Positions 1-56,631 of a stretch of DNA of 64,000 bases are shown here, one piece after another. The DNA comes from Schmidtea polychroa (taxonomy: Eukaryota): positions 120,878,397 to 120,942,396 of the forward strand of contig CM097887.1 in NCBI GenBank assembly GCA_044892525.1, read 5' to 3'. Position 1 is the first letter of the stretch; every line of letters begins with the position of its first letter. The position numbers and the translations under genes were made by a program. Below the pieces are notes generated by a model that worked only from the letters and a program-made list of their open reading frames with translations, was not told the origin of the DNA and did no database searches.

Positions 1-2
1 CC

Positions 3-656
3 TGTGCAACGAGGAAAAACACTGGATCGAAATGGAAAGCACCTTTGACGCCAATGCCGGTACCAATAGAGCCGATGACAATGATATCAATGGACGTAGT
101 TGGTCCATTACCGGAATCGGATAGAGGAAACGTTTATATTTTAGTGATTACAGACTTTCTCACGAAATTTCCAGAAGCATTCGCGATGCCAGACCAAAAA
201 GCTAAAACAATCGCAAAAATTTTGGTAGAAGAGATATGTTGCCGATATGGAACACCAAAACAAATATTAACCGATCAGGGAACTAATTTTATGAGTGAGA
301 TAATGAGCGAAGTAACGAACTATTTCAAAATCGCAAAACTAAGAACATCTCCATATCACCCTCAAACCAATGGGATGACGGAAAGATTTAATGGAACACT
401 TATACAAATGCTATCAAACTACGTCGATCGTCACCAACGAGATTGGGACGAATATATAAACCTATGTCTTATGGCGTACAGAATGTCGATTCACGCATCA
501 ACGAAAATGAGCCCATTTAAATTAATGTACGGAAGAGAATGTAACATGCCAATGGACCTGGAATACCACCACCGATATCGCAGTATATGGAGATCAACGA
601 TTATGTTACGAAATTCAAGGAAAGAATGCAAGAAATTTGGGAAACTGCGGGATTAA
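3..656 (+). CDS. Ty3/gypsy integrase core (frame open from the window edge; frameshifted near 563-586)
   Basis: Motifs SMDVVGPLP, ILTDQGTNFMS and PQTNGMTERFNGTL give an intact D,D(35)E triad. The frame is open from nt 3 (CATRKNTGSKWKAPLTPM). Confidence 0.95.
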   Translation, partial: CATRKNTGSKWKAPLTPMPVPIEPMTMISMDVVGPLPESDRGNVYILVITDFLTKFPEAFAMPDQKAKTIAKILVEEICCRYGTPKQILTDQGTNFMSEIMSEVTNYFKIAKLRTSPYHPQTNGMTERFNGTLIQMLSNYVDRHQRDWDEYINLCLMAYRMSIHASTKMSPFKLMYGRECNMPMDLEYHHRYRSIWRSTIMLRNSRKECKKFGKLRD

Positions 657-3367
657 ATATCAAGTTCTACCAGGAAAGTTATAAAGACTTACACGATCGA
701 AAGAAAAACGTGAAGCAACATACGTTTCAAACAGGTGATTGGGTAATGATAGAAACCCCGGAATTAATTCCAGGAACCACAAAAAAGTTACAACGCAACG
801 GAAAAGGACCATATGAGATTCTATTTGTAGGCGAAACCAATGTAAGAGTGAAATTGGTAAATAATCCATTCACCAGGCCAATATACGTGAACGTGGCACG
901 ATGTAAATCAATTCCAAAAACCGCCACCAGTCAACCGGAAGGTCGAACATTAACCACACGTTCGCAAACATACAGAATGAACATGATGCAACAACTCGCA
1001 GAACCTATCACTGGACGATTGGGCATACAACCATCGGAAGCGGAAAAAATCGTACGAGAGGTAAAGATAAAATTACCCGGATGGGCAAAAGATCGATTAG
1101 ATTTCGAAATATTAGGAGGATTATTGACGATGATCGAAAATTATGCGAACAGAGAGAGGACACATCCGTTATTGCGAGTAGTTAAAAGTCAATGGCCAAT
1201 ATTATTTACAATAACAGATCATTATGGAGACACACCATTACACAAACTCATGAAAGTAGGTAACAACGAGCAAATACTAGAAACAATAGAAGCATTTCAC
1301 GACTGCAAGCGATCAACAGAACAAGAAAACAACCAAGGTTACACACCATTAATGATAGCAGCAAACAGAGGCAAAACCAAAGACATTATAACCGCATTAC
1401 TTGATACTGGATACGAGCGGAAAAATGCACTACATCATGCTATCGAAGGGAAAAGTACCGAGGCATTCACGTCTTTGATGGAACTACTATCATATGAAGA
1501 CAATCGAGAAGTCGGAAACATGTATGATGGATTGTTAACAGCGATCAAAGAAAAACTGACAACAATTACCGGAATATTAATTACATGGAGAAATCCAATT
1601 AAAAATGATTATATGATCAACGTAAACGAAGCGTTCACGAGAGGAGAGAACACGCTGATGAGAGAAGCTATGAAAGGACATCATTTATTCGAAATCCCGA
1701 ATCAATTACTAGAACGAGGGATAAAATTCACAAATCATAAAGATGAACAGTTAGCAAAAAAGCGAATCGACACATTCGAAAAATCACTATTCCAATTTTC
1801 TAACCAAGTACGAAATAAATATTGGGAAACGGTAAGTGTGTTATATATGATGGACACAATGAATAACATCCGCGAGAATTACCTGGATATTATCCAAATA
1901 CTTACAGCAGAGGAACGAATCAATAATCCAAACGGAAAGAAAACGAAAATAAGGTATGGGAAATCAAGGGAACCAAAGTCGACAACGAACCAAACGGTCA
2001 CAAACAACGTCATCGAAACCAAATCAATGAGTATAGATCAAGAGGCAATAATACGCAAAGCAAAAGAAGTATTCTTCGAGGAAATGCTAGAGCTGTCAGA
2101 CGAAATAATATTGTCAAAAATAATAAAAGCCGTACACACATACGCAAGAGACCAAACCACGGGTTTAGATATCGGGAAAATCAAAACCTTCTTGCCTCGA
2201 GCATTTACGATGGTAACAAAGGATTCCAGAACACCTCTACAACAAGCAATACTAGCTGCAAAAGAGAATAGAGCAATAACGATCATGAGAATCCTTGGGG
2301 AGATGGGCGAAGAAACCAACACGAAAAATGAACAAGGCGAAACCGCCATGATGTATGCAGCTATAACGAAAATACACCCAAAAACACTCCACATACTACA
2401 TCAATCGGGATCGAAACTAGACGAAAGGTCCAATGAAGGAAATTCCACCTTGGACTGGGCAACCATACAGCCAAACTTAGAAATGATCAGATTTATTTGC
2501 AAAAATGCGACAAAAGAAGAAGTTGAAAATATATGCAGAAACACATCTCAATTTCAGTGGAATACGGTACGGAAAAATCTAGAAGCAATGAAATTATTAT
2601 TAACATGGAGAGTACCACAAAATAATAAATACGCGATAAATGTAAACGAATTCTACGAAAACGGAGAAAACGCGATGGTAAAGAATACATTAACTAAAGG
2701 GGGGACACCAAAAATTATTTTAATAGTATTAAACAGAGAAGACCTCAAATTCACGCAAAATCAGAACGAGCAACAACGAGTTGGAAAACATCGTCGTATT
2801 CAATTGAGAGAGTTAGTCAAAGAATGGAATAGAAAGAGACATGCTGCAACGGGTAGAAAAGAGTTTGAATTCGAAGCAAAATTAGCAAGAAACAGAGTGC
2901 TAACAGCATATCGCAGATTATTGAACGATATAAATGTCGAGGACGACATTTTAAACGACAGCGGGGGAGATAAACACGATGACAATGACGGAAAAGGCCG
3001 AAAAGAGGATAAAGGGAAAAGAGAACCGGAAGAGGATAAACCGGAAAACAAGGATTTGGATACGAAAAGAGAGGGAAACAGCCCGGGAACCAAGACCAAA
3101 GAGGAGGAAAAACCGAATAATGGAAAACAGAGGGTATGCCTACCTTTCACTAACAAAGAAATAGAGACAAATATGATATTAATGATAATTATGCTTACCA
3201 TGATAGAGTTAGTAACAGCTCATGGAGGGACGAGAACGATAAAAGAAACCAAAGAAGCGGAGAATCAAGATAGCAAAGAGGATGAACTAAAACAAGAAAA
3301 GAAAAAGCAAGCACAAGAGCAGCAGTGGGATTTAAAGGAAGAATGGGACTTAAAGGAAAGGGACTAA
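587..3367 (+). CDS. Integrase C-terminal (GPY/F, SH3-like) region fused to an ankyrin-repeat protein with a hydrophobic tail
   Basis: FQTGDWVMI..KKLQRNGKGPYEI is a typical gypsy IN C-terminus. Ankyrin consensus matches: YGDTPLHKLM, QGYTPLMIAANRG, KNALHHAIEG, SRTPLQQAILAA, QGETAMMYAAI, EGNSTLDWATI. Confidence 0.85.
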   Translation: MEINDYVTKFKERMQEIWETAGLNIKFYQESYKDLHDRKKNVKQHTFQTGDWVMIETPELIPGTTKKLQRNGKGPYEILFVGETNVRVKLVNNPFTRPIYVNVARCKSIPKTATSQPEGRTLTTRSQTYRMNMMQQLAEPITGRLGIQPSEAEKIVREVKIKLPGWAKDRLDFEILGGLLTMIENYANRERTHPLLRVVKSQWPILFTITDHYGDTPLHKLMKVGNNEQILETIEAFHDCKRSTEQENNQGYTPLMIAANRGKTKDIITALLDTGYERKNALHHAIEGKSTEAFTSLMELLSYEDNREVGNMYDGLLTAIKEKLTTITGILITWRNPIKNDYMINVNEAFTRGENTLMREAMKGHHLFEIPNQLLERGIKFTNHKDEQLAKKRIDTFEKSLFQFSNQVRNKYWETVSVLYMMDTMNNIRENYLDIIQILTAEERINNPNGKKTKIRYGKSREPKSTTNQTVTNNVIETKSMSIDQEAIIRKAKEVFFEEMLELSDEIILSKIIKAVHTYARDQTTGLDIGKIKTFLPRAFTMVTKDSRTPLQQAILAAKENRAITIMRILGEMGEETNTKNEQGETAMMYAAITKIHPKTLHILHQSGSKLDERSNEGNSTLDWATIQPNLEMIRFICKNATKEEVENICRNTSQFQWNTVRKNLEAMKLLLTWRVPQNNKYAINVNEFYENGENAMVKNTLTKGGTPKIILIVLNREDLKFTQNQNEQQRVGKHRRIQLRELVKEWNRKRHAATGRKEFEFEAKLARNRVLTAYRRLLNDINVEDDILNDSGGDKHDDNDGKGRKEDKGKREPEEDKPENKDLDTKREGNSPGTKTKEEEKPNNGKQRVCLPFTNKEIETNMILMIIMLTMIELVTAHGGTRTIKETKEAENQDSKEDELKQEKKKQAQEQQWDLKEEWDLKERD

Positions 3368-3389
3368 AAGAAAGGGACTAGGAAGATGC

Positions 3390-4184
3390 ATGTCTAGAGC
3401 GTATCAGAAACTAGTACTGATAAATGAGGACACAGAACCAATAACAGAAGTAAGAATACAAGAAGCATACCGAAATCGAAACGGGAAGAGAATAACGAAC
3501 GTTAAAGGAAAAGAGGTACACCTAGGAAAAGGTGGTGAAGTAGTAATAACGCAGCTCCAACCTAGAAAAGAGCACAAAGTCTGTATTTCAAGATTAGGAC
3601 CCGGTGAGAGATGCCATCAATATGTGACGCAGCAGCAGCCGCCGAAAGAATACACGGTTTGTATCTGGAGAAACGAATCAAAAAGAGAATGCCGACGATA
3701 CCCGGGGAAAAGAGGAAAGAAAAGAAAAAACCACGACGAAAAGGACGAAGGAGGAAAGCACAAGAAAACCGGCGAGGAAGCTCAGGACAACTATGTTTCG
3801 GAGGAAGAGATGGAAAAAATACAAAAGATGGCAAAGGAGGGTATGAACGAGGAAATAGCAAGAATACGAGAGATGATGAAAGGGAATGGCAAAAGAGGGA
3901 ACGAGAAAAGTACAGAAGCAATATCAACATTAACAAACAAGGAAAAACCAGAGAGTATAAGCGTGAAGCAGATGATGTGGATCAGTGGGATAATAATAAC
4001 AGGGGCCTTCCTAATCATAACGGGGGGAACAATAAAAATAATTAAAGATAAACGACATCGCGGAGAACTAGAGATGACCCGAATCAGAAATTTCCAACAT
4101 CGAGTGAAACGACCAAGTGATATCAAACAAGAACAGTGGGTGGAGGCCTGGAACGCTCAGCGCCCTCCAAACTCACGTATATAG
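3390..4184 (+). CDS. Element A accessory ORF, unknown; duplicated Cys-pair motif and one predicted TM helix
   Basis: 264-aa ORF in the element's A-rich style. TQLQPRKEHKVCISR..RCHQY and TQQQPPKEYTVCIWR..ECRRY; hydrophobic MMWISGIIITGAFLIITGGTI. Confidence 0.7.
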   Translation: MSRAYQKLVLINEDTEPITEVRIQEAYRNRNGKRITNVKGKEVHLGKGGEVVITQLQPRKEHKVCISRLGPGERCHQYVTQQQPPKEYTVCIWRNESKRECRRYPGKRGKKRKNHDEKDEGGKHKKTGEEAQDNYVSEEEMEKIQKMAKEGMNEEIARIREMMKGNGKRGNEKSTEAISTLTNKEKPESISVKQMMWISGIIITGAFLIITGGTIKIIKDKRHRGELEMTRIRNFQHRVKRPSDIKQEQWVEAWNAQRPPNSRI

Positions 4185-4344
4185 AAAGGAATATAACTGT
4201 ATATAATTGTAAAAAGTAAGTATATCTTATGTATATAACAGTACTATATCTGTATATAAGCGTGGTATCAATATTATACAATAACGGGAATCATAAAATA
4301 AAATTAAATTTAAATAAGAGTTGAAAAGTGTATATAAATTAAGA

Positions 4345-4704
4345 ATGGATCAAGGAAATAACGAAATGAACCACAATACAGTAACTGAAGAATTATGGAA
4401 GCAACAATGTGCCGTATTAGCACAATTAGTGTCCAATTTGCAAGAACAAGGATTGACGATGCACAGAAACCTAATCGAGAGTATGAATAGAGGATTTAGT
4501 TATTTGAAGACAATTGAAGACCAGAGGTTGAAAATCGAACAAATGCAAAGAGAGATAGAGAGGATAACCCAATATAGCCGTAGACAGGAAATTGAACTAG
4601 AAAGAATGATGGAGGAAGCAGAACAGACAGAAATAGAAGACTGGTCGGAATGGCTAATGAATAGAGAGGAGAGCGGACACGAAGCCGACTCTTCCGAACC
4701 CTAA
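4345..4704 (+). CDS. Element A accessory ORF, small coiled-coil protein
   Basis: First ATG at 4345 follows an AT-rich spacer; helical E/Q/R-rich sequence. Confidence 0.6.
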   Translation: MDQGNNEMNHNTVTEELWKQQCAVLAQLVSNLQEQGLTMHRNLIESMNRGFSYLKTIEDQRLKIEQMQREIERITQYSRRQEIELERMMEEAEQTEIEDWSEWLMNREESGHEADSSEP

Positions 4705-4789
4705 ACCAAACCTAGCTTAAAATGTAAATAATTGTAAATAAAATATCGAACCTATATCGATAAGAACTATATGTACATATAATTATAGA

Positions 4790-6178
4790 ATGGATAAACG
4801 ACAAAGAGAAGAGTTCAGAGAGATTGTTGAACGAGTCCGAAAGTCTACAACGATCAGAATACACAAACATGTTATGTGCGGAATATGTGAAAAGTTGTTA
4901 AAAGAACCTCACCAAACTCAATGTGGATGCAGAGTATGTAAAGAATGTATCAGTGAAGCAATAAAGAATAGACCACAGTGGTGCCCGGTGTGTAAAGAGA
5001 CACTAATATCGAGTTTAGAAGACACTAACGAGGATAAAGCCGCAGTGAAAGACATGTTAAACACCAACCTGGGATGCAAAAATGCCCCATGCGAATGGAA
5101 AGGAGTAATATGGAAGGTAGTACAACATATGGGAGAATGTATGTACAGAATTGGCCAGTGTGAAAGGTGCCATAAAACCATTCGAGCAAGCGAAGAAAAA
5201 GAGCATCAAAGGCAGTGTGAAGAGAGATTGGAAAGATGTGAACATTGTGGAGAAATAGATACGTGGAAAAATCTCACCCTCAAACATCACAATGTCCAAG
5301 AGGAGAGGGAATGTGCAGAGTTCAGTGGGGAATGCCCAAACGGATGTAACCAAGGGGAAATAATAAAGGTGGCACAGCATCTAAGGGAATGTGAAAAGAA
5401 AAGAATGACATGTGTACTAGGTAAATGGGGTTGTCAGAAACTACTACACCGAGGGGAGTTACCACATCATTTAGTAGAAAATGCTTCAACCCACGCAGAA
5501 ATGTGGTCGACTGCGTTACAAGAAAGCGAAGAGAAAGTAAAACAAATGGAGATAGAGATAACATCGTTGAAAGTGCTAGTCAAAGAATTACTAGAAGAAA
5601 GGGAAGCGTTCGAAGAAGCCCGAGCAAACATAAAGATGCAAATAAACCGAATAGAAATCAGTAATAATCAGGCCAAGGAGCTACATCAGAAAATACGGGA
5701 AATAAATCTAAATGAGATAACCCCAACAGCACCCTACATATGGAAAATAACGGGAGTAAAAGAAAGAATACGAAAAGCAAAACCCGGAGAAGAGACAAGA
5801 ATAACAAGTCCTGCATTCCATTCTTGGAAAAATGGGTACAAAATGAAAATGAAGATATATCCCAACGGGGACGGAACCGGATTAGATACACACTTTTCGA
5901 TTTTCTTTCTGTTATGTAAAGGGGAATACGACGAAATAATAGAGTGGCCGTTCCAGGCAAAAATCGATATTGCACTAATGAATGACCGAAGCATCCACGA
6001 ACAAAGCTTCAAGACAACTGGAAACCAAATGTGTTACCAGAGACCTACGGAAGAAGAAGGATCAGCAACAGGAGCACCTACGTTCATCCTACAACAAAAA
6101 GTAGAAGATATGGCAAGAAATGACACGGTGTATATCAAGATGACCGTGAGGAAAGAGGAGAAGGGCAGAACGGAGTAA
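4790..6178 (+). CDS. TRAF: Full-length intronless TRAF (TRAF2/3/5-like): RING, TRAF zinc fingers, coiled coil, MATH
   Basis: RING CGICEKLLKEPHQTQCGCRVCKEC..CPVC; zf-TRAF repeats (CKNAPCEW..HMGEC, CPNGC..HLREC); MATH PYIWKITG..GYKMKMKIYPNGDGTGLDTHFSIFFLLCKGEYDEIIEWPF. Confidence 0.95.
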   Translation: MDKRQREEFREIVERVRKSTTIRIHKHVMCGICEKLLKEPHQTQCGCRVCKECISEAIKNRPQWCPVCKETLISSLEDTNEDKAAVKDMLNTNLGCKNAPCEWKGVIWKVVQHMGECMYRIGQCERCHKTIRASEEKEHQRQCEERLERCEHCGEIDTWKNLTLKHHNVQEERECAEFSGECPNGCNQGEIIKVAQHLRECEKKRMTCVLGKWGCQKLLHRGELPHHLVENASTHAEMWSTALQESEEKVKQMEIEITSLKVLVKELLEEREAFEEARANIKMQINRIEISNNQAKELHQKIREINLNEITPTAPYIWKITGVKERIRKAKPGEETRITSPAFHSWKNGYKMKMKIYPNGDGTGLDTHFSIFFLLCKGEYDEIIEWPFQAKIDIALMNDRSIHEQSFKTTGNQMCYQRPTEEEGSATGAPTFILQQKVEDMARNDTVYIKMTVRKEEKGRTE

Positions 6179-6371
6179 CTAATCGAATAATGTTGTATAT
6201 AATAATCTGTATATATCGGTGTATATAACCAATAAAATATTATATAATAATAGTATGAAAACCCTAAATACGAAAACCCAAAAATGATGCAAAAATTTCC
6301 AAAGAAACAGTAAATAATGAATAAATTCCTTTTTCATAATAAAAAGATTAATCGATGTCTATGATTTAGAG

Positions 6372-7427
6372 ATGACACAAGAGAAACTAACCGAAACTGC
6401 GATAGCCCCAACCAATGTCAACAAGACACAAATTCCCCGAGAACATAACAAAAAATGGAACAAAGTAATGTTCCAACTAACTAATCTCACCCGAAATCAC
6501 ATCGAAGAAGCTAGAGAGGATGAGAATAGTCAATACCAATGGTTAATACACAACTTAAGAGCGGAAGGAGAAGCATGCAAAAGAGCATCAAAATGGGCGT
6601 CACTAGAAAATACCCGCCAAGAAGCGCACAGCCACTACTTAAAGCAGCTAGTGCAGGAAGCGAGAAAGAGACTTACCGATGAGAACACCAAGCGCGAAGC
6701 GGAAAAGCAAATAGAAGGAAGGAAAATGATGCACTTAGTGGCAGAAGCGAGAAAATGGAAAAGACAAAACAGTGAAATGAAAAAAGAGATGAAAGAATTG
6801 CCCATGAGACTCGGATATGAAAGCGAACAAGGTAAATGGGAGGAGAATTTAATAATAAAGGAAGAATTGAAACGGTTGAGAAAGGTCGCCGCCCGAAGTC
6901 AAACCTGGCAAACAAAGGCTATGGAGTTTGAGCGACATTTCGCAATAAAATGCGACATAAGAGAGCACGAGAATGCCGCAATGGAAGAGATGATAACCCA
7001 ACAAGCAGGACGGGTTGTGGAATTAGTAAATCAGGTAGAAGAGATGAAAAGAGACCTTAATGGATTACAAGGATCGTTGGAACAAAGAAACATGGTCCTA
7101 GCTGGAAAAAACAGAAAATTAGAAAACGAAAGGAAAATGTACACCGAAAATATCAAAAACTTGGAAATAGAAATTGAAAAATGGAAGGGCGACGAGAAAA
7201 TCAAGGCCCTAGATAGACAAATAGAGATGAAAGACGAAGAGACAAGGTACCTCACCTACCTGCTCGACGAAGAGCTGAACATCACTCGAGCTCTAAGAGA
7301 CGAAATTAATGAGTTGAGAGCCCAAATTCCCCAATATTACCTACCATACGACCCTATTGCGATACAGTTACATCCCGCGGTCGATAGTGATGAAGGTTAT
7401 GTAGGCCAGGAGGAAACCTTCGTATAA
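6372..7427 (+). CDS. Element A accessory ORF, long coiled-coil protein of unknown family
   Basis: Uninterrupted 351-aa E/K/R-rich helical ORF flanked by AT-rich spacers; ends ETFV. Confidence 0.7.
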   Translation: MTQEKLTETAIAPTNVNKTQIPREHNKKWNKVMFQLTNLTRNHIEEAREDENSQYQWLIHNLRAEGEACKRASKWASLENTRQEAHSHYLKQLVQEARKRLTDENTKREAEKQIEGRKMMHLVAEARKWKRQNSEMKKEMKELPMRLGYESEQGKWEENLIIKEELKRLRKVAARSQTWQTKAMEFERHFAIKCDIREHENAAMEEMITQQAGRVVELVNQVEEMKRDLNGLQGSLEQRNMVLAGKNRKLENERKMYTENIKNLEIEIEKWKGDEKIKALDRQIEMKDEETRYLTYLLDEELNITRALRDEINELRAQIPQYYLPYDPIAIQLHPAVDSDEGYVGQEETFV

Positions 7428-7593
7428 GGGTGAATAAAAGATGAAAACAAAAATCGGGACGTATATCCCAAAAAAAAAAAATTAAAGTATTGTAAAAGTA
7501 TTTAAGGGACTGTAACCCGAACTATTAAATTTTATATAAATGTATATGTATAAGTCGCACTATAGCGCACCATTAACTGTACATATTACAGAT

Positions 7594-8298
7594 ATGAAAA
7601 TCGAGGAAATAATAGAAATTACGAGCGACGTAGAAGAGGGAGAGATTGAGGCAGAAACAACAGAAACACAAACGTTAAAGGCCGAGTTACGGGAAGAGAA
7701 GTACGAAAACGAGAGACTAGTAAACAAATATATAGAAGACCGAAAAATGATTAAAATACTTAAGAAAGAGTGCGAAGTGCTAGGAGAAATAAAGAGAGAA
7801 GCCGAAGAGAAGAATGAATGGCTGCAAGAACAACGAAAACGAGGAAGAAATTGGGAAAGGATTGCAGAGGAACTATGGCAAGAGAGGGCAAGCTTCAAGG
7901 CAGAAGAAGTAATCCAGGATTATTGGAAAACAGAGGCGAAAGAACGCCAAATAACTATAAATAAATTAAATCAACAATTGGAGGAAAAACAACGAGAAAG
8001 TGAGGAAATGAAGAAATGGATTCGCAAATACCAAGAGATCGAGAGAAAACAACAACAACAACAACGAAACCTTTCGCAGGAAAACGAACAAGATTTCCTA
8101 CAAATCGAACTAAAAAGGAATCTCGACAAAAAACGGGAAGAAATTAGAAGACTGAAAAAGGAGATAAGGCACATGAAAAGGGAGGTCCGTGAAAAGAACA
8201 GACAGTTGGAAATGCTGCCCGAGTTAAGACACAGAGTCATTAAAGCGGAATCCACCTTGATGAGAATCGCCGAAAATAACCCAAATCAGAACCATTAA
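7594..8298 (+). CDS. Element A accessory ORF, coiled-coil protein of unknown family
   Basis: Long charged helical ORF; likely start at ATG 7594 after TTACAG (the track starts at 7540). Confidence 0.7.
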   Translation: MKIEEIIEITSDVEEGEIEAETTETQTLKAELREEKYENERLVNKYIEDRKMIKILKKECEVLGEIKREAEEKNEWLQEQRKRGRNWERIAEELWQERASFKAEEVIQDYWKTEAKERQITINKLNQQLEEKQRESEEMKKWIRKYQEIERKQQQQQRNLSQENEQDFLQIELKRNLDKKREEIRRLKKEIRHMKREVREKNRQLEMLPELRHRVIKAESTLMRIAENNPNQNH

Positions 8299-8353
8299 AT
8301 TAAGGGTCACTAAAACCAATTGTAAATAAACATAATGAATGTATAATAGTATC

Positions 8354-8998: not shown

Positions 8999-9575
8999 TA
9001 GTTCATAAATTCTAACTCAAACATTTGTGTTATCATATGTGGAAACTTTTATTGTATATACAAACTATCACCTTAAGTGATAATTGCTTGGTCTTGATTT
9101 GACCTATATCTTAGAATAAAAATTTTTTGTTTTTGTATAAATGTTTCGATATATCCTTTTTATGAATGCATGAAGTAAGATAACTATGCAATTGCGGGAC
9201 GCAATTTTGATGGGTCCCCGAGTGATTTGTTGGGCTGAGCCGAAAGATAGCTGGGAAATCAGGTTAAACTTAACTAAAGAAAAATAAAAAAAGAAAAATA
9301 AAATAAAAAAAATAAAATAAATAGATTGAGAAATAAAATAGAATAGAATATAAGAAAAGCAATAATTAGAAAATAAGAATTAAAACAAAAAACATAAAAA
9401 TAAGAACAATTAAATAGGACAATAGAATGACGAAAAATAACGTAAAAGGTAGTAGATAATAAGGAAATTAAGGGAAATAAATAAAAACATAATTTTAATA
9501 AAGAAAATAAGAAGAAATAACCCAAAAACAAGGAAAAAAAATTAAATGAATAAAATAAGGCGGTACTCAATTCTG

Positions 9576-9609
9576 ATTGGTCCGCATAAACAAAAAATAC
9601 CTATATAAG
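9576..9609 (+). promoter_or_regulatory. LTR promoter: reverse CCAAT box (ATTGG) and TATA box (TATATAAG)
   Basis: ATTGG at 9576 and TATATAA at 9602. The same arrangement recurs in the LTR-like repeats at about 49,700(-) and 32,190(-). Confidence 0.55.
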
Positions 9610-11652
9610 TAAACAGCAAATTCACTATAGTCAATGTTAAAACCAAACCAATTATAGGTAAGAATAGTATTAACTACATAAATGTTAAAACCAAACCAAT
9701 TATAGGTACTCGACAATCAGGAAAACCAAACCATACTCAGACGACTATTAGGGACAGTTCTATAGACTACTCATTCATATAACCGATTTGATCAGTTTAT
9801 ATTTCGGCTCAGCCTTTGGAACTACAGAATTTTTCAAATAATAAAGTAAGGGTGTATTGCTGTTATGAAATTTGTTTTTGAAGGATTAAATATTTCTATT
9901 ATATTAACCTAACCTTTGAATAAAAACTTCTCCATTCGATTTCAATTTTTTAATGATTTTATAGTTCATAAATTAATTTAAAGGTTAATGATATATAAAT
10001 CTTTATGCTATGTTTTGTCATCGAACGTATTGATTATGCTAAAATTATTTTTTTGAGAAACGTGGAGTTGAGGAGACCCACGCCATGGTATGAGGAGCCT
10101 TCGGGAGCTCAGCCGGCGGGTGTGGATCTCTTCAATCACGCAGCTGACGTGGGCCGGAATGTGGGGGCTTCCTCACGGGTCCGTCGCTGAGGGAAATAAA
10201 ATGCTGCAAGCACGGGTTTAAAGTACAGAGGAATGTATTCCAATATTGAAAAGTAGAGCAAATTTGAATTGAAAATGACTGAGGTGGCTACAAACTCTTA
10301 GTAAACATTACACTCTGAAATTTCATCCGACATCAGAAATCGTATATTGACATCAACTGACATTCCATCTTTTAGCAGAAAAATATTTTTCTATCAAAAC
10401 TTACTGCGTACAAATAGGTTCATCAAATGCGAAATCAGAATATAGAGAGCATAAATAAAGATTTATTCAACAAAAGATTTGTAGCATAAATATAATTGTC
10501 AACAAACGCTGTAATTTTTCCATTGCTTCTGAAAATCCACGATAGCGGCAACGCGAGGTTCTTTCTATAAATGACTCTTTCGACCAAAATAAGAGAGATT
10601 TCTGTTGAATGAACTGCTGGGAATATTTCCCGAAATCACAACATCCAAGTTGAAAAACGGAGGGAACTGCACATCGCGAGAATAAAATTCCAACGTTCAT
10701 GCGCGGTGAGAATTACTCATAGAGAACATATTGAATAACTAAAATAATTCCAACTCGCAGTGTGAGACGATCAGCTGCAACCCGTTGACATAGATAGTAA
10801 GGAAACAGACAAGGCAAATCACACGCATTGCCACATATAAATACACACTGACATATGCCGCATGCATCCTTTTCCCAGCCCGCTGATGACGGTGAGAACA
10901 AAAATTGAAGCACACGCTCATGACATAATCATCTCCAATAGATATGTATCTTTCCGATTCATGTGGCTAATGATTTCTACGAGTGATTCATGCGTCGTCG
11001 GATGACTGTTAATAATCGACTAAATTTTATAGGTTGATTGCACTAGTAGACTCCATAATGAAAAATAAATTAATTGATTTTAGGATGGGGATAGAAATCT
11101 GATCATACGCGACTTATTAAAAATCTAACAGTAGCACGTTGATTAACCGGGTTTTCTGAATTTAATATTCAAATATGAGTTACAATTTGGGGCCATAAAT
11201 TTAAGGATCGTTCACGCGGCCCTGGAGAATTTGTTTTACGTTTTTCAAAAATAAATATCTGTAGTCGAAAAGCTATGTGCAAAAATGAGCATTAATTATT
11301 CAATCATGCAAATATTCCTGATTCTTCCTAAACCATTTCTATGGTAAACTGTAAATCTAATGTCCATTATGTCAATACATTCGCGAGTCATTTTTCACGT
11401 AAATATTTGAAAATCTCAGATAACGGTAGGTAATGAATATTTTGAGTATAACCATAAATTTTTGGCAGAGTATTATCCAAATGTTAATTTCTCTTACACC
11501 CTAAATAGACCTCTAAAAATTCACTGAATGCAATTAACACTATTTCTAACGAAACTATATCATTTATTCTTTCCCCTTTTACTTAATTTTACGAAAATCA
11601 ACAAATGATTGTGTCCATACTAGTTTAGTAGAGATCGCTGATCTTAATTCTT

Positions 11653-12303
11653 ATGCTCATTGTTTCTTTGTTACAGCTATCAACAATGTTGCCAAGCTCG
11701 AAGCCGTCGCTCAAACCCTGTTTCTCCTGTGCCGACAAAAATACCGTAATCCGAGAATTACAGGCCCAGATCGGTCGATATAAAAAGAAAATCGACGATC
11801 TGGAAGGTACATGGTTTAGCCCAGTACAAATGAAGGAGGTTCAAAAGAAATTGTACCGCAGTGAGCATTGTCGCGATGCTTTGATAAGCGAAAGTAGAGC
11901 TCAGCGTAGCCTAATCAAAGAGCAGTCCGAAGCTCTACATAAAGTTTACGTCCAAGCCGCTACAACCCGAAGGATCGTTAGTATTCCGATTAAAGAAGCG
12001 GACAATGTCTTCCCCGTTCACCATGAACCTTCATTTAGTTCGCCACCCTTGTCGAAAAGATCTTGTCAGGAATGTGTGGAGGCCGACCTCTCCCCCAGGC
12101 CATCGGACGTACCTACTCCCGGTACTGGCAAGGTATCGCATTCAGCCACGACGTCCTCGGCAATCTTGTCTGCTAACCCCTCAAAACCTAAGCGTCGCCA
12201 ATTGTCCAGAGCGGAGCGTAAGAAGCGCCAACGTGAACGGGCAATTGTCAAACAACGAGAACTATCTGCCAACCCCCAAGTGCTTCGAATGATCCACCCG
12301 TAA
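11653..12303 (+). CDS. Unknown repeat-borne ORF (CxxC, coiled coil, basic tail), copy 1; probable start ATG 11686 after a splice acceptor
   Basis: LKPCFSCADKN..QMKEVQKKLYRSEHCRD..IKEQS; two degraded homologues in the window; TTTCTTTGTTACAG acceptor ends at 11676. Confidence 0.55.
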   Translation: MLIVSLLQLSTMLPSSKPSLKPCFSCADKNTVIRELQAQIGRYKKKIDDLEGTWFSPVQMKEVQKKLYRSEHCRDALISESRAQRSLIKEQSEALHKVYVQAATTRRIVSIPIKEADNVFPVHHEPSFSSPPLSKRSCQECVEADLSPRPSDVPTPGTGKVSHSATTSSAILSANPSKPKRRQLSRAERKKRQRERAIVKQRELSANPQVLRMIHP

Positions 12304-13004
12304 CGATCGATCTGACCGTAGGAATCCCAGGGCGAATCATATCTGCCGCTGGTGTGACTTGGGAGGAGAATGCCTCCGAGTTTTTTTATCTAGAAGAGCT
12401 ATTGGCGGATGCGGGGTGGGAGAAGTGAGGGCCGCAACACAATACAACCGTGCAGGGCGCGAATGGACAAATATACTATCATGACTCCTTTTCTTCTTAA
12501 TCTATTCTCCACCAAGTGTACTTGTTATGTAGTGTATAATTATCTAATGTATCATGATAATAAAATAAAGAAATTTTTGGTTAAAATTTTGTTGTTGTTT
12601 AAATCTAACTAGCTGTGGTAAAGGTTCAGAGTAGTGTTCGCAAAGCGAGAGTAAATTTTGAGTTCGAGAGGCAGTGGTCAATTTTGTGCCGAACCATGGG
12701 TCAGGGTAGAGAGAGAATCTGATGAGGTAAACAGACGTAAGTCCTTCCAGCGGCCGTCAGAAAGGGAAGTCGAGGCCTCATTAAGGAGTAGTCCTAAGGT
12801 AGGGGCTCACCTGCTTACTGGAGTCTCGCCAGCATAGCACATTTCCAACGTGAAGCAATTCGCGGGTGCTATGTTGGAGGGCAGGTTGTGCGGGGTCCTG
12901 CTCCGGGTGGACACGGGCGTATGTAGCGTACTGATATGGACACGCATCCCCTAGACAAGGACGTAGATTGAGCAGAGTCAACCAAGCACTACCCCAGCAC
13001 AACA

Positions 13005-15992
13005 TTAATATAATAAATTATTTGTAATAAATTATTTTTAGGATTTTTATGAATTTTATGAATTTATTTGGAATTATTTCGATATATTGTAAGTCAGATT
13101 TATGTTTAACTAAAAATAAATAAAGTAATCGCGAAACACAATTCTCATTTCTTCCATAGATACATAGAAATTGGATTCAACGAAATCAAACAACTTATTT
13201 CCTGGTTCTTCTGAAATCAATTGCCTTATTGCTAACTTATACCCTTTGGAAATTTTCACATATTTTTAATACCAGAAAATTATTATTCCAATAGATTTTT
13301 TCGTGATTTCAAGTAATCTTCAAAATTCTTCGTGATTCTCAACATATTCAAAAAAATATTTTTAGTTGAGTTTTGTCATGTTCCGTAATTAATATTTGAA
13401 TTTTTTCCTGTAAATTCAAAGCAATTGAAGAACACCGTAATTAATATTTGAAATTTTATCTTTAATTCGATATTGATTGTATTCCGGTTATGTAGATAAA
13501 TCTGATGACAAAGATAATGGGGTTTCTATATCGATCAGGATCTGGTTCAACAGTGATTTTTCAGCATGTGGAGATTTTTGTTAACTCTATTAAATTTCAG
13601 ATTTTTCCGGAATTCACTTTACTGGTAAGTTCTATTTGTTGTTGAATAAATATTTTAAAAGAATTTGTTATTATGATTTTTTAAGTAAGATTTTTTTAAT
13701 TTTTAAGTAAGTTTTAAAGCTTAAATTCAAATCTCAGATAAAAATGAGATCATTATTCAAGCTCTTAAATATTACTTTTAGTCAACATTAATATTATAAA
13801 TTATTTGTAATAAATTATTTTTAGGATTTTTATGAATTTTTTGAATTTATTTGGAATTATTTCGATATAATGTAATTCAGACTTATTTTTAACTATAAAT
13901 AAATAAAGTAATCGCGAAACACAATTCTCGTATCTTCCAAAGATGCAGAGAAATTGATTGTATTCCTGTTATGCAGATATTTTTGATAACAAAGATAATG
14001 GGATTTCTATATCCATCAGGGTCTGGTTAAATAGTTTTTTTTGAGTATGAGGATATTTTTGTAAACTCTAGTTTATTTCGGATTTTTTCGGAATTCACTT
14101 TACTGGTAAGTTCTATTTGTTGTTGAATAAATATTTTAAAAGTATTTGTTCTAATGATCTTCAAGCAAGTTTTGTTTTAATTTTTAATAAACTTTTAAGG
14201 CTTGAAATCAAATCTCATATAAAAATGAGATCATTATTCAAGCTCTTAAATATTACTTTTAGTCAAAATTAATATTATAAATTATTTGTAATAAATTATT
14301 TTTAGGATTTTTATGAATTTTATGAATTTATTTGGAATTATTTCGATATAATGAAAATCAGATTTATGTTTAACTATAAATAAATAAAGTAATCGCGAAA
14401 AACAATTCTCATTTCCTCCAAAGATTCATAGAAATTGATTTCTGTTATGCAGATATTTTTGATAACAAAGATAATGGGATTTCTATATCGATCAGGGTCT
14501 GGTTAAATAGTTTTTTTTTGAGTATGAGGATATTTGTGTAAACTCTAGTTTATTTCGGATTTTTTCGGAATTCACTTTACTGGTAAGTTCTATTTGTTGT
14601 TGAATAAATATTTTAAAAGTATTTGTTCTAATGATTTTCAAGCAAGTTTTGTTTTAATTTTTAATAAACTTTTAAGGCTTGAAATCAAATCTCATATAAA
14701 AATGAGATCATTATTCAAGCTCTTAAATATTACTTTTAGTCAAAATTAATATTATAAATTATTTGTAATAAATTATTTTTAAGATTTTTATGAATTTTAT
14801 GAATTTATTTGGAATTATTTCGATATAATGAAAATCAGATTTATGTTTAACTATAAATAAATAAAGTAATCGCGAAAAACAATTCTCATTTCCTCTAAAG
14901 ATTCATAGAAATTGATTTCTGTTATGCAGATATTTTTGATAACAAAGATAATGGGATTTCTATATCGATCAGGGTCTGGTTAAATAGTTTTTTTTTGAGT
15001 ATGAGGATATTTTTGTAAACTCTAGTTTATTTCGGATTTTTTCGGAATTCACTTTACCGGTAAGTTCTATTTGTTGTTGAATAAATATTTTAGAAGTATT
15101 TGTTATAATGATTTTCAAATAAGTTTTATTTTAATTTTTAATAAACTTTTAAGGCTTGAATTCAAATCTCAAATAACAATGAGATCATTATTCAAGCTCT
15201 TAAATATTACTTTTAGTCAACAATAATATAATAAATTATTTGTAATAAATTATTTTTAGGATTTTTATGAATTTTATGAATTTATTTGGAATTATTTCGA
15301 TATAATGTAAATCAGATTTATGTTTAACTAAAAATAAATAAAGTAATCGTGAAAAACAATTCTCCTTTCCTCCCAAGATGCATAGAAATTGATTGTATTC
15401 CTGTTATGCAGATATTTTTGATAACAAAGATAATGGGATTTCTTTGTCGATCAGGATCTGGTTTAATAGTGAATAATAGATCATTATCATTTTAAGGATT
15501 TTTATGAATTTTATGAATTTATTTGGAATTATTTCAATATAATGTAAGTCAGATTTATTTTTAACTATAAATAAATATAGTAATGATATTTAATGATATT
15601 TATATAATGATATTTATATAATGATATTCAAATAATGATATTTATATATCGATCAGGGTCTGGTTTAATAGTGATTTTTGAGTATGTGGAGATTTTTGTA
15701 AACTCTAGTTAATTTTGGATTTTTTCGGAATTCACTTTACTGGTAAGTTCTATTTGTTGTTGAATAAATATTTTAGAAGTTGTTGTTAGAAATGATTTTC
15801 AAGTAAGTTTTTTTTTAATTTTTAAGTTACTTTTAAGGCTTGAAATCTGATCTCACGTAATAATGAGATCATTATTCAAGCTCTTAAATATTACTTTTAG
15901 TCAACATTAATATTATAAACTATTTGTAATATATTGTTTTTTGGATTTTTATGAACTTTTCTGAAATTATTTAGAATTATTTCGATATAATT
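13005..15992. repeat. Tandem satellite, about 477-481-bp unit, about 6 copies (first and last irregular)
   Basis: Marker GAGATCATTATTCAAGC recurs at 13746, 14227, 14704, 15181 and 15865. Confidence 0.92.
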
Positions 15993-16121
15993 TAAGTAGT
16001 TGATGCTAAATTATTAGTAAGTCCCGTGTGTGATGAACCATTAGTATTAGCCGATCATGAACTTGGTCTTAATGCTAGAAGTGCAGTTTAATCATTGAAA
16101 ACTAAGGAAATTTGCTATAAT

Positions 16122-18197: not shown

Positions 18198-19135
<938 letters not shown>

Positions 19136-24510: not shown

Positions 24511-27002
24511 CATAGATTCCCAACCTGTGGTACGCGTACCACTAGTGGTACGAATTGATAATTTTGGTGGTACGCCAAGAGTTTTGTACTTTTAAAAAAC
24601 TTATATTTTATGCTAAGATAACAAAAAAATTAATCAAGCTATAAATTCGTATATTCTTCTGATAGAACGATACATACCCAACATATTCAGAAAAATATGC
24701 GTAGTTAAAAGAAAAATATTTTTAGTACTAACACGTTCGAACAAATCCAGAAATATACTATTAGGTTTAGTTTTTATTTTAATTTACAAAGCAAGCTGGG
24801 GTGTGATAAATTTGTATCCATCTTATTAAGAAATAGTCCATAAGTAAATTATTATTTTTTAGATTTTTCAAAAAGAAAAAAATATTTCTATCCGGATTCG
24901 AACCAGCCCCCGAAGTTAAGGTCTTACCAATTTTTTTACCCATTGATAATGAAAAATTTTGCCGATAACAATGAAAATTTAAGTTCATATAGCGAAGAAG
25001 AGGAAATCTTTGAAAAGACAAATTGTGTGCAGAAAAAAAAGCATAAAAAGAAAGAGAAAGTAGCCAGGCTCTATAATCCAGAATACTTAAGCTATGGATT
25101 TTCAATTAAATCTGGCTCAGAGTCTTTTCCGATTCCGCAGTGTGTTATCTGTTTCGAAACTTTATCAAATGGATGCATGAAACCATCACTTTTAAAAAGG
25201 CATTTCTCAACTAAGCATCTGGAACTAAAAGATAGGCCTTCGGAATATTTTCAAAGGAGGGTTGCGGAACTGGGCCTTCAAAAAGCTTTTATGACATCTT
25301 TCAGCAATTTAAACACAAATTATGTTCGGGCTTCATATTTAGCGAGCTTACATATAGCAAAATGTGGAAAGGCACATACAATTGGTGAAACTTTATTGCT
25401 GCCTGTTGCTAAAGATATCGTAAGATCAGTATTTGGCGAAAATTCAGCGAAGGAAATCGAAAAAATCTCATTGTCGAACAACACGGTAAAGTCACGAATA
25501 GACGATATGGCAAATCAGATAGAAAAAATTTTAATCTGCAGATTAAAAGACTGTTGGTTTTTTTCTTTGCAGCTTGACGAAAGTACCGACGTTTCAAATT
25601 TGGCTCAATTACTTGTCTATGTTCGATTTGATTTTATGAACGAAATACACGAAGAAATGCTTTTTTGTAAACCTTTGAAAATGAGAACAACATCTAATGA
25701 AATTTTTAACATACTTACTGGTTACTTTGCTGAAAATGAAATAGACTGGAATAAATGTGTAGGGATTTGCACACATGGTGCTCGAGCCATGATTGGAAGC
25801 TTATCTGGGGTAGTTACAAGAATTAAAGAAGTTGCCGTTATGTATTTCTACGCATTGTATAATTCATCGTGAATCTTTGGCGGCAAAAAATATGCCCGAT
25901 CCCTTGATAACAGTTCTAAACGAAGCCGTAAAAAAGATAAATTTCATAAAGTCTCGAGCACTTAATTCCCGATTATTTTCAATTCTATGCAGTGAGATGG
26001 GAAGTGACCATACCACACTGTTGCTGCATACTGAAGTCCGGTGGCTTTCAAAAGGAAAAGTTTTAAGTCGACTATTTGAATTGCGAAATGAGGTAAAAAT
26101 CTTTCTTAAAACTTCCCAAGAGCGAAACGATATTAATTTTACAAATGAAATTTGGTTGTCTAGGCTTGCATACTTATCAGATATTTTTGCTAGGCTGAAT
26201 GAATTAAATTTAAGCTTACAAGGCGCAAACAATTCGGTGTTTGATCTCAACGACAAGATATTAGCATTTAAGAGAAAATTAAGATTAATATTGCAACAGA
26301 TTGAAAAAGGAGATATTTCAATGCTTTTTTCTTTAAGCGCCTTTGTTGATGAAAACAAAATTTCTGTTTCTGAGCAAGTATTGGCCGATATTAATCAACA
26401 TATCATATCCATGTTACAATCCTTTGAAAAGTATTTCCCGGAAAACGTTATTTCTCAAAATTGGATTCGAAATCTCTTCGCATTCCAATTTGATATCCCA
26501 GATAATGTTAATGATAAGGAATCTTTTATTGATCTAATTAGCGATGGCAATTTAAAAATTAAATTCAGTAACTCTAATTTGTGCTCATTTTGGCTTTCCA
26601 TTCGTAAAGAATATCCTGAATTGTCAAGTCAAGCTATTAAATTTTTAATGACATTTAGTACTACGTATTTGTGTGAAACTGGATTTTCAACCATGTCAGC
26701 GATAAAAAATAAATACAGATCATTGCTTAGTATAGAATCTGATCTTCGTCTCAAATTGTCGAAAATTTCACCAGATATTTCCATGTTAGTTAGGAATAAA
26801 CAAGCTCAACCATCTCACTAAATAAAAAAAAATATTATGAGCAAAAAATTTTTAGTTTTTTTGTTTGATTTTTTTTCTTAACCACAAAAGAAATTTTTTA
26901 TATATAAAATGCTAGATTTAAAATAAGCCCCCCAAATTTTTTACGTGGTACTCAAAAATTATTTTTAGTGGTACGAAACCCAAAAAAGGTTGGGAACCGC
27001 TG
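24511..27002 (+). mobile_element. Full-length hAT (Buster/Charlie, SCAND3/ZBED8-like) DNA transposon
   Basis: TIRs CATAGATTCCCAACC and GGTTGGGAACCGCTG; perfect 8-bp TSD AGATAGGG (24503-24510, 27003-27010). Confidence 0.95.
24943..26821 (+). pseudogene. hAT Buster transposase, frameshifted near 25,835; second catalytic Asp replaced by His
   Basis: BED finger PQCVICFE..LKRH, SLQLDESTD, CTHGARAM (canonical CTDGA), THCIIHRE, HTEVRWLS, TYLCETGFS, split over two ORFs. Confidence 0.93.
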
Positions 27003-35623: not shown

Positions 35624-35781
35624 NNNNNNNNNNNNNNNNNNNNNNNNNNNNNNNNNNNNNNNNNNNNNNNNNNNNNNNNNNNNNNNNNNNNNNNNNNNNN
35701 NNNNNNNNNNNNNNNNNNNNNNNNNNNNNNNNNNNNNNNNNNNNNNNNNNNNNNNNNNNNNNNNNNNNNNNNNNNNNNNNN
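35624..35781. other. Assembly gap (N run)
   Basis: Ns. Confidence 1.
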
Positions 35782-40225: not shown

Positions 40226-40645
40226 ACCACAGGCATGTCTGCTTGCCTATCGAAATGCAGTTAACGAGCGTACTGGCGAAACACCTTTTTATCTAATGTA
40301 TTTGAGACGAAACATTAGGAGTTTCAACCCCAACTTCTCAATACTTGGACGTTCCGAATAATAAAGTTATAATGCAAGAATGATTACATTCGCGCGGGGT
40401 TAAAAATAAAGTATCGCCAGGAACAATACAAAAACAGCTATGATAAAAAGGCGCATGAGCATGGAATAAAAATCGGAGATTTAGTATATTCGAATAAACC
40501 GGAACCAGTAAAAGGCCTATCTACAAAATTGCAAATACCATTCAAAGGTCCATACACTGTGTGTGATGCTACGACAACTAATTTAAAGTCACGTCTAATA
40601 AATAACAAAAGAGCAGAAACTATTATAGTTCATGCCAATCGGTTT
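40226..40645 (+). pseudogene. Ty3/gypsy integrase C-terminal relic related to element A
   Basis: LLAYRNAVNERTGETPFYLMY; YDKKAHEHGIKIGDLVY..KLQIPFKGPYTV. Confidence 0.75.
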
Positions 40646-42761: not shown

Positions 42762-42895
42762 NNNNNNNNNNNNNNNNNNNNNNNNNNNNNNNNNNNNNNN
42801 NNNNNNNNNNNNNNNNNNNNNNNNNNNNNNNNNNNNNNNNNNNNNNNNNNNNNNNNNNNNNNNNNNNNNNNNNNNNNNNNNNNNNNNNNNNNNNN
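42762..42895. other. Assembly gap (N run)
   Basis: Ns. Confidence 1.
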
Positions 42896-47098: not shown

Positions 47099-47361
47099 NN
47101 NNNNNNNNNNNNNNNNNNNNNNNNNNNNNNNNNNNNNNNNNNNNNNNNNNNNNNNNNNNNNNNNNNNNNNNNNNNNNNNNNNNNNNNNNNNNNNNNNNNN
47201 NNNNNNNNNNNNNNNNNNNNNNNNNNNNNNNNNNNNNNNNNNNNNNNNNNNNNNNNNNNNNNNNNNNNNNNNNNNNNNNNNNNNNNNNNNNNNNNNNNNN
47301 NNNNNNNNNNNNNNNNNNNNNNNNNNNNNNNNNNNNNNNNNNNNNNNNNNNNNNNNNNNNN
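47099..47361. other. Assembly gap (N run)
   Basis: Ns. Confidence 1.
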
Positions 47362-47617
47362 NCCCTGTTCGCTTCGCTTCACCAACCCTGTTAGAACACG
47401 GGGTTAATGATAATGATATTCGTGGACAGGACTAAGATTCAGTTTATTAATATGTTTACATAACTATGATAAAAGATAATAGCATAAACCATTTCAAAGT
47501 AATATAAAACAATAAATTCAAAAGAATAAAAACAATTAAAAAAAATTTTAAAAAAATAATAAAAAAAAGTAAAATTCGGATGGTGGGTATCCTTAGTTTT
47601 TTATATATAGAGAGATT
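47362..47617 (-). mobile_element. Second, inverted copy of the Helitron-like repeat at 41393-41953
   Basis: Near-identical reverse complement (CCCTGTTCGCTTCGCTTCACCAACCCTG..); both give the PVRFASPTLLEHGVNDNDIRGQD shadow ORF. Confidence 0.8.
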
Positions 47618-55564: not shown

Positions 55565-56611
55565 TGTTGGATGACAGAGGAAGAAGAATCGAAGAGTTTG
55601 AACTAACACATTACTATAGAACGGGCAGCAACAAGTTCAGAATCAATATATACGTAGAGCCCAGATAACTCAAGCCGGACAAATCAAAACAATTATCATT
55701 ACAATTTGATTACTGACTTATGTACATTAGTTATTTATCGGACTATTATTTTATGACAATTATTATTACGGTGTTTTATATTATTTTATCAATGTATCTT
55801 ATTTATTTTATGGATTTTATGTTTGATATTTCATGTAAATAAAACATAGTATGGGGATTAATTAAATAATTAATATCAGTATAGCTACAAAATACATAAT
55901 ATTGAAAATAATAAAAATATAAGTGGACACTTTAAATAATTGAAAAACATATGTTTTAAAATCATAGGAGCATGAGTGGTTCTCGAGTCGTGGGAACATA
56001 ATAATAATTAATAGCAATAATAATAATTTTAGTAATAATAATAATTTTAATTTTTTTATCACAAATTTTTAGCAATCATAAATAATTTTAATATTTTAAT
56101 TTTTAGCAATCATAAATAATTTTAATATTTTATCACATAACAATAATCAATTTTGTAGCAATTATTTAATAAGCATGTATATAAAAATATATTAATTTCT
56201 TAATTATATTTCACTTCTTAAGTACACTTGAAAAATATAACAATTTAATTTCATATACAAAAAAAGTATAAATAGCGAGTCAAAATTCATTTTTTTCGCC
56301 CCAAAATTTTAACCGCGTTAACATACTAAAAAGGTTAATCCTTATTAGTGCTAAAACTCGAACAGACAAACAGAAACGTTCAAAAGCCTACACGCAACAC
56401 AGCAAGAGAATACATAACATTCACACAGTACATACAAGCATATTCGGTTGGATATTTGAAGGATTTTTGGATTTTTGTAACCTAGCAACAAATTCATATT
56501 GGTAAATTTTTCTTTATAATAAAAGTTTTATAAATCACTTTGTCTTTTGATATATTTGTACATATATAAGAACCAGTAAGTTGAGTGTTCCCGAATATCG
56601 AGACCTCAACA
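55565..56611 (+). repeat. 5' LTR of element B
   Basis: No differences from 60693-61739 seen by eye; identical 66-aa shadow ORFs offset by 5,128 nt. Confidence 0.97.
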
Positions 56612-56613
56612 TT

Positions 56614-56631
56614 TGGTGCCGCGAACCGGGA
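56614..56631 (+). promoter_or_regulatory. Primer binding site TGGTGCCGCGAACCGGGA
   Basis: Starts with TGG 2 nt after the LTR; resembles the complement of tRNA-Phe 3' ends (TGGTGCCGAAACCCGGGA), less so tRNA-His. Confidence 0.85.

Follow-up and report, generated by a model that had tools for sequence, protein, structure and literature searches.

Close to the left end of a 64,000-nucleotide stretch of Schmidtea polychroa DNA (contig CM097887.1 of assembly GCA_044892525.1, positions 120,878,397 to 120,942,396; the whole stretch is called here the window, and positions are counted from its first letter) lies a complete intronless TRAF gene. This gene is probably, with a likelihood that we place at about 0.72, an accessory gene of a planarian-type Ty3/gypsy-like long terminal repeat (LTR) retroelement, endogenous-retrovirus-like and of the kind of the Burro elements, giant gypsy-like elements known from Schmidtea mediterranea (Grohme et al., 2018; GYPSM1, Jurka, 2007) and reviewed by Arkhipova and Yushenova (PMC6431247). 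The initial annotation of the stretch had placed a complete intronless TRAF inside a retrotransposon, and the follow-up supports a position among the accessory genes of an LTR retroelement: the TRAF domains are intact, an rve integrase lies on the same strand, and the gene sits in a packed array of open reading frames (ORFs). The gene is read as cargo of the element because the integrase tail continues in frame into the ankyrin region, because strand, packing, and composition are uniform, and because the spacers between the ORFs share a motif family. Since the gene is not flanked by a pair of LTRs within the window, its placement inside the element rests on the integrase side, the gene packing, and the composition. 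The carriage of TRAFs by planarian retroelements is already published in outline (PMC6431247); what may be new here is the layout, in which a full-length TRAF forms a cistron of its own 3′ of the integrase.

The TRAF gene and its protein

The TRAF ORF runs without interruption from ATG to stop at 4790-6178 on the forward strand, and the chance of a stop-free run of its 462 codons, calculated from the base composition, is about 2e-14. The N-terminus of the protein aligns with the N-termini of its nearest relatives, which makes the ATG at 4790 the likely start. It is confirmed that the gene encodes a full TRAF, consisting of a RING, five zinc fingers, a 77-residue coiled coil, and a MATH domain. 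In Pfam, the ORF matches TRAF-mep_MATH (PF21355) with 92.6 bits against a cut-off of 27.4 and MATH_2 (PF22486) with 91 bits, and its RING matches zf-C3HC4 with 21.4 bits, the cut-off being 21. The Pfam family zf-TRAF gave no match to the window protein even at E ≤ 1; in two alignments of the window TRAF with its relatives, the Cys/His ligands of the five fingers vary little or not at all, and the RING ligands C30, C33, C45, C50, C53, and C65 are nearly invariant across the TRAF family alignment. Comparison with the PDB by sequence returned the TRAF domains of TRAF3, TRAF1, and TRAF2 (E about 2e-27) and, for residues 22-157, the RING-zinc-finger chains of TRAF6 and TRAF5 (E about 6e-14).

The fold predicted for the protein agrees with this domain order. 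The AlphaFold2 model, obtained from an alignment of 46 sequences, has a mean predicted local distance difference test score (pLDDT) of 92.4 and is built of small zinc-finger-like units up to residue 231, a helix at residues 232-308, and a beta-sandwich at residues 316-455. The helix is a single one, with pLDDT above 90, and is predicted to form a trimerising coiled coil. When the model was compared with the PDB by Foldseek, the top of the list was occupied only by TRAF domains (TRAF1-6), with template modelling scores (target) of 0.7-0.84. Across the alignment columns in which at least 85% of 45 relatives agree, the window protein keeps 53 of 58 positions.

The probable retroelement setting of the gene

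The integrase core (rve, E 8e-14 in Pfam) is found at the left edge of the window, on the strand of the TRAF gene, and is followed by the integrase C-terminal domain and an ankyrin region (Ank_2, E 2.4e-17 in Pfam), the latter two sharing one reading frame. The integrase frame is open from base 3 of the window, so pol extends further to the left; the window thus cuts the element, and its 5′ LTR, gag, protease, reverse transcriptase, and RNase H fall to the left of the window. Behind the integrase-ankyrin gene, six ORFs follow on the same strand up to position 8998, all of them open and separated by spacers of 22-193 nt. When the six were scanned with Pfam, family matches were obtained for 4790-6178 only. 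A weak resemblance (E 0.001) connects the 264-aa ORF, the first of them, with the tail of the ankyrin ORF. On its forward strand, the window is A-rich as one block over the first 9 kb (AT skew 0.28-0.47), and the base composition shifts at about 10050. Within 8999-10050, a purine-rich tract at about 9275-9560, followed by ATTGG and TATATAAG, was noticed by eye; these signals are LTR-like. The 3′ end of the element shows no similarity to the LTR of a second LTR element present in the window (described below), and scans of the window for Rfam families and tRNAs gave no matches. At 40394-40642, the window holds what is left of a further integrase C-terminal domain, which shares 39% identity with the one in the TRAF element.

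The spacers of the element differ from its coding sequence in their motif content. The motif TGTAWATAA occurs 21 times in the window, where 5.8 occurrences are expected; on the forward strand of the TRAF element, nine lie in the 718 nt of spacers, where the motif is concentrated in 4185-4345, 4705-4789, 6179-6371, and 8299-8338, and none lies in 7.8 kb of coding sequence. AATAAA is about sevenfold denser in the spacers, whose 718 nt hold 8 occurrences, than in the coding sequence, where 12 occur in 7824 nt. The 127-aa ORF and the TRAF ORF have similar start contexts, with 74% identity over 34 nt (motif family D1), and TGTATATAA is also found in both LTRs of the second LTR element. TGTAWATAA could be a TATA-like signal or one linked to polyadenylation, and the spacer motifs as a whole fit internal TATA-like promoters combined with poly(A) sites, or processing signals.

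Ancestry and age of the gene

The closest named proteins are planarian TRAFs, namely TRAF-2, TRAF-4, and TRAF-5 of Dendrocoelum lacteum and the TRAF-2-like protein A of Dugesia japonica, with 30-32% identity. Nearer relatives are four proteins known only as UniParc entries (P0001, P0005, P0019, and P0023), which are 32-39% identical to the window TRAF; 39% is the highest identity of any protein found, and P0005 is the only one of the four of full length. When the 40 nearest proteins were placed in a neighbour-joining tree, 100 of 100 bootstraps united the window TRAF with these four in one clade, which is separate from the named planarian TRAFs.

In composition, the gene is a part of its surroundings. 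The TRAF ORF contains 0.41 A and 0.18 T (AT skew 0.39; third codon positions 0.45 A and 0.16 T), and the neighbouring ORFs of the element have AT skews of 0.34-0.51. In the host-like proteasome exon at 62541-62909, T prevails at third positions (0.45, with A at 0.33). There is neither an A-run after the stop codon of the TRAF ORF nor a target-site duplication flanking it, and the only repeats on its flanks are the spacer motifs common to several spacers. Because the composition matches that of the element and the nearest relatives are only 32-39% identical, any capture must be old. The intronless state does not single out the capture through mRNA that the initial annotation inferred, since passage through the element's RNA removes introns by any route. 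Judged by its sequence, the window TRAF is a derivative of the planarian TRAF radiation that has long been resident in an A-rich retroelement lineage, and the data point to an old and maintained accessory gene, not to a recent capture.

The RING variant

One claim of the initial annotation concerned a His-to-Cys change in the RING finger. Residues 45-50 read C-G-C-R-V-C, so that the fourth zinc ligand is Cys, and this part of the claim is real; the variant is not special, as Cys takes this position in all seven RING-bearing planarian-type TRAFs of one alignment (A1), including D. lacteum TRAF-2 and TRAF-4 and the gene model P0010 discussed below. Among 59 RING-bearing relatives examined by a pattern scan, 13 have Cys and 46 have His as ligand 4, and the Cys group includes D. 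lacteum TRAF-2, TRAF-5, and TRAF3-like proteins of two crinoids and two sea stars. In another alignment (A2, 46 sequences), the ligand-4 column contains 20 Cys and 20 His. Cys is able to stand in for His as a zinc ligand. As far as the aligned proteins tell, Cys at this position is the local norm of planarian TRAFs and says nothing special about the retroelement; the variant was dropped as a point of interest.

TRAFs in other element-like settings

Two further TRAFs bear on the carriage of such genes by mobile elements. P0010 (UniParc UPI00060351E8) is a 511-aa TRAF gene model that has an integrase tail at its N-terminus in a single reading frame; its first 50 residues match the integrase C-terminal domain of the TRAF element (15 of 38 residues identical, E 3e-5). 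P0010 is 48% identical to the D. japonica TRAF-2-like protein A and clusters with it at 93% bootstrap, and this protein, too, may by its relationship be element-borne.

The other case is P0064, a 398-aa TRAF with the Cys variant at RING ligand 4, which forms a clade with D. lacteum TRAF-2 at 100% bootstrap. It was found on contigs L003 (positions 1-4981), L004, and L005, from metagenomes JGI 3300027940, JGI 3300006014, and ENA ERZ27235085. There, one strand carries an array of a coiled-coil ORF, an ORF with an inhibitor-of-apoptosis-type RING, the TRAF, two coiled-coil ORFs, and an RNase_T-like ORF, with spacers of about 150 nt, each containing AATAAA. All five ATGs of the array have the motif TAATTTTAG in front of them; in three cases it adjoins the ATG, and in the other two it lies within 3 to 16 nt. 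With such start contexts, the array looks like a polycistron that would be resolved by cis- or trans-splicing. The RNase_T-like ORF has a homologue in the second LTR element of the window, namely its 406-aa ORF (E 4e-12). The coding DNA of the P0064 TRAF is identical at four loci from four samples and therefore gave no signal of selection, and when metagenomes were scanned with P0064, nothing beyond the contig already known came up. The P0064 arrays are unproven as retroelements but point in the same direction, toward carriage of TRAFs by retroelements, and such carriage may recur. No retroelement context was seen at two other loci, L001 (P0036) and L007 (P0035). A Tara Oceans scaffold (L008, 258-6532) carries three intronless same-strand ORFs with short spacers that make up an innate-immunity gene trio: a 580-aa TRAF with Cys at RING ligand 4, an 888-aa TBK1-like kinase, and a 466-aa leucine-rich repeat protein.

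A broader proposal can be built on these cases, namely that LTR retroelements carry and multiply a considerable part of the planarian TRAF expansion, with at least three TRAF lineages present as free-standing cistrons in accessory arrays with shared intergenic signals, and that some annotated host immune TRAFs are element genes. The three lineages would be the clade of the window TRAF, the clade of P0010 and the D. japonica TRAF-2-like protein A, and the clade of P0064 and D. lacteum TRAF-2. We regard this proposal as tentative and somewhat doubtful. We saw no count of the element-borne share of the expansion in PMC6431247.

Alternative explanations

Several observations weigh against the interpretation of the gene as an accessory gene of the retroelement. 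There is no LTR pair around the TRAF gene, and the region 8999-10300 is repeated nowhere in the window. The integrase-ankyrin gene carries one frameshift within the window, and, given this frameshift, the copy of the element may be dead. No sibling copy of the TRAF element was found in the collections searched: exact look-up of the sequences of the TRAF and the 351-aa ORF gave nothing, a word-indexed search of 5.8 billion proteins with the TRAF gave a single match of 37% identity, a HMMER scan of 1.84 billion representative proteins with the TRAF gave none above about 40% identity, a scan of viral and metagenome contigs with the window TRAF gave no relative, and the integrase-ankyrin ORF used as a query returned generic ankyrin proteins only. 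The five conserved positions altered in the window protein all lie in the MATH domain. Among the nearest relatives, P0001 is without most of MATH, and P0019 and P0023 diverge from TRAF past the coiled coil, so that three of the four have no intact MATH, as decaying copies would. Finally, a splice acceptor before each ATG was considered as a processing signal and rejected, because an AG within 4 nt upstream is present in four of six ORFs against a background of 38% (P 0.15).

Part of this evidence can be read to mean that the TRAF is merely carried and has no role, its ORF being open in a recently dead provirus for lack of time. The frameshift in the integrase of the window copy and the loss or replacement of MATH in P0001, P0019, and P0023 speak for such a passenger. 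However, at only 32-39% identity to its nearest relatives, the window TRAF keeps all zinc ligands and the 53 of 58 conserved positions, and such divergence of a protein whose fold is preserved argues that purifying selection has acted in the lineage for a long time; all accessory ORFs are, moreover, open. A passenger is thus unlikely, although it deserves more attention than the remaining explanations.

It can also be considered that the gene belongs to the host, either as a processed TRAF retrogene or as a domesticated element-derived TRAF, and lies beside a remnant of a retroelement. The 3′ LTR of the element is only inferred, the relatives of the protein are annotated as ordinary TRAFs, and about 100 MATH/TRAF transcripts, many of them well expressed, are present in S. 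mediterranea (Swapna et al., PMC6109357), a report that also bears out the planarian TRAF/MATH expansion mentioned in the initial annotation. Against an origin as a host gene, the composition of the ORF equals that of the element and is unlike that of host exons, the ORF is embedded among same-strand ORFs with spacer motif families in common, neither a poly(A) tail nor a target-site duplication accompanies it, and P0010 joins integrase and TRAF in one reading frame. We consider a host gene distinctly improbable. Least credible, and very improbable, is that the ORF array is another mobile or viral insert beside an integrase remnant, e.g., a fragment of an endogenous large DNA virus with its own promoters, since, although clusters of TATA-like TGTATATAA and AATAAA flank the cistrons and TRAF-like proteins are known from DNA viruses, a single reading frame covers the integrase C-terminal domain and the ankyrin region, neither composition nor strand changes between the integrase and the last ORF, the remaining ORFs match no Pfam family, viral or otherwise, and the TATA-like motif is also present in the LTRs of the second LTR element.

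A possible role and its significance

If the TRAF is an accessory gene of the retroelement, then it is possible to propose how it could act. Transcription of the element would lead to production of the TRAF protein, and the separate expression of the accessory cistrons might, tentatively, be achieved via the TGTAWATAA/AATAAA signals of the spacers or via splice acceptors near the start codons. The protein would form trimers, alone or mixed with host TRAFs, and its MATH groove and RING could redirect TRAF-dependent ubiquitin signalling, with its innate immune, NF-kB/JNK, and cell-death outputs, in favour of the element. It is reasonable to suppose, with the initial annotation, that the element might modulate survival signalling through its TRAF; for Burro elements, interference with host apoptosis and ubiquitination was already proposed (PMC6431247). 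Data on expression are available for related systems: BURRO1 RNA is enriched in the intestine and goes up on knock-down of smedwi-2 (PMC8532177), and TRAF homologues are induced via TBK1, TRAF5 throughout the intestine (PMC13563047).

As a single locus, the gene makes a modest point: a cleanly resolved RING-to-MATH TRAF cistron behind an integrase is added to the Burro phenomenon. Planarians serve as a model of regeneration, and the large TRAF/MATH family that they possess has been read as complexity of host signalling (PMC6109357). If many of these genes are retroelement cargo, then immune gene counts and read-outs of “TRAF induction” in RNA sequencing need a second look, and the persistence of such elements in stem-cell-rich animals would also have to be rethought.

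Features and remaining content of the window

The coordinates of the TRAF gene and of the element around it are collected in Table 1.

Table 1. Parts of the TRAF gene and of the retroelement, in order along the window.
Feature	Position	Strand	Evidence or remark
3′ end of pol: integrase core and C-terminal domain, followed by ankyrin region with two Ank blocks	1..3367	+	Pfam
Accessory ORF, 264 aa, lysine/glutamate-rich, hydrophobic segment near C-terminus	3390..4184	+	
Spacer with four TGTATATAA motifs and one AATAAA	4185..4345	+	
Accessory ORF, 127 aa as listed, helical	4321..4704	+	likely start ATG 4345
Spacer between 127-aa ORF and TRAF, with two TGTAAATAA (AATAAA in each) and TATAG just before the ATG	4705..4789	+	
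TRAF gene, 462 aa	4790..6178	+	ORF call, Pfam, PDB sequence matches, alignments, AlphaFold2, Foldseek
RING finger, residues 30-68	4877..4993	+	eight Cys ligands, ligand 4 = Cys47; Pfam and alignment
Five TRAF-type zinc fingers, residues 96-235	5075..5494	+	every Cys/His ligand present
Coiled coil, helix residues 232-308	5483..5713	+	AlphaFold2 model
MATH / TRAF-C domain, residues 316-453	5735..6148	+	Pfam, PDB sequence matches, Foldseek
Spacer after TRAF, with two TGTATATAA and two AATAAA	6179..6371	+	short motifs shared in order with spacer 4185-4345
Accessory ORF, 351 aa, coiled-coil rich	6372..7427	+	
Accessory ORF, 252 aa, coiled-coil rich	7540..8298	+	
Accessory ORF, 219 aa, hydrophobic N-terminus and one internal hydrophobic segment	8339..8998	+	small membrane protein by eye
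Non-coding 3′ end of element, candidate 3′ LTR inside	8999..10050	+	inferred; bounds approximate

The second LTR element of the window (55565-61739) is very young: its two LTRs of 1047 bp are 100% identical and have TG...CA ends, it is flanked by a 4-bp target-site duplication, GTTC, and a primer-binding-site-like TGGTGCC... stands right after the 5′ LTR. Its three ORFs encode a gag-like protein of 798 aa with one CCHC knuckle, a protein of 131 aa, and the RNase_T-like protein of 406 aa; as there is no pol inside, the element looks non-autonomous. DNA transposons are represented by a fragment of a PiggyBac-type transposase at 18482-19027 (DDE_Tnp_1_7, E 4e-17) and by two hAT-like transposase genes, each split over two ORFs, at 24943-26821 on the forward and 43980-45836 on the reverse strand; these genes fit the transposon-rich character of planarian genomes (PMC6109357). 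A satellite with five to six copies of a unit of about 477-481 bp (84-99% identity) occupies 13000-16000, directly after a GC-richer stretch. Host-like sequence comprises a possible exon at 11653-12303 (a 216-aa ORF without a family match, closely preceded by an acceptor-like site and followed by a poly(A) signal) and the proteasome subunit exon at 62541-62909 (Pfam E 4.7e-16). Runs of N, which are assembly gaps or masking, lie at 35624-35781, 42762-42895, and 47099-47362.

Comparison with known systems

The closest known systems are the Burro elements, whose modules include a RING-type motif, Smc, MATH_TRAF_C, BIR, ankyrin, and a BCL2-like domain (PMC6431247). The element of the window resembles them as a planarian LTR retroelement with an integrase and MATH/TRAF, ankyrin, and coiled-coil (Smc-like) modules. 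The arrangement, as far as the two can be compared by description, is different: in Burro1, MATH_TRAF_C lies within the 4,873-aa ORF1 polyprotein, upstream of the protease, whereas in the window a full free-standing TRAF is found downstream of the integrase. Modules of the BIR, BCL2, SUMO-like, and env types have no Pfam match in the window's part of the element; in Burro they lie upstream of the protease, i.e., in a region that corresponds to sequence outside the window, which makes this a weak negative. A Burro-like element of Dugesia (Girardia) tigrina is similar in having MATH_TRAF_C on a separate accessory ORF and not in the polyprotein (PMC6431247), but this ORF is located upstream of ORF1, while the window TRAF stands 3′ of the integrase among other small ORFs. 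The TRAFs of planarian hosts share with the window protein both the order of domains and the Cys as fourth ligand of the RING; the window protein differs from them in that its gene sits in a retroelement array.

A TRAF fold in a virus-like genome is also known from the iridovirus TRAF homologues of spotted knifejaw and orange-spotted grouper (Foldseek E 1e-20 and 2.9e-15), and TRAF-like proteins of the giant viruses of Klosneuvirinae match the model of the window TRAF with E values down to 2.3e-14. The carriers of these genes are, however, DNA viruses, and the proteins are 10-25% identical to the window TRAF, several of them being truncated. Virus-encoded TRAF homologues, as well as the BIR and BCL2 modules of Burro elements, are thought to redirect host signalling in favour of the element that carries them. 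With regard to the position of additional genes, the element can be compared to complex retroviruses and to foamy-like endogenous retroviruses of fish, which likewise have extra regulatory ORFs in their 3′ part; none of these has been reported to carry a TRAF (PMC6431247), whereas the element of the window has six accessory ORFs, with the TRAF as one of them.

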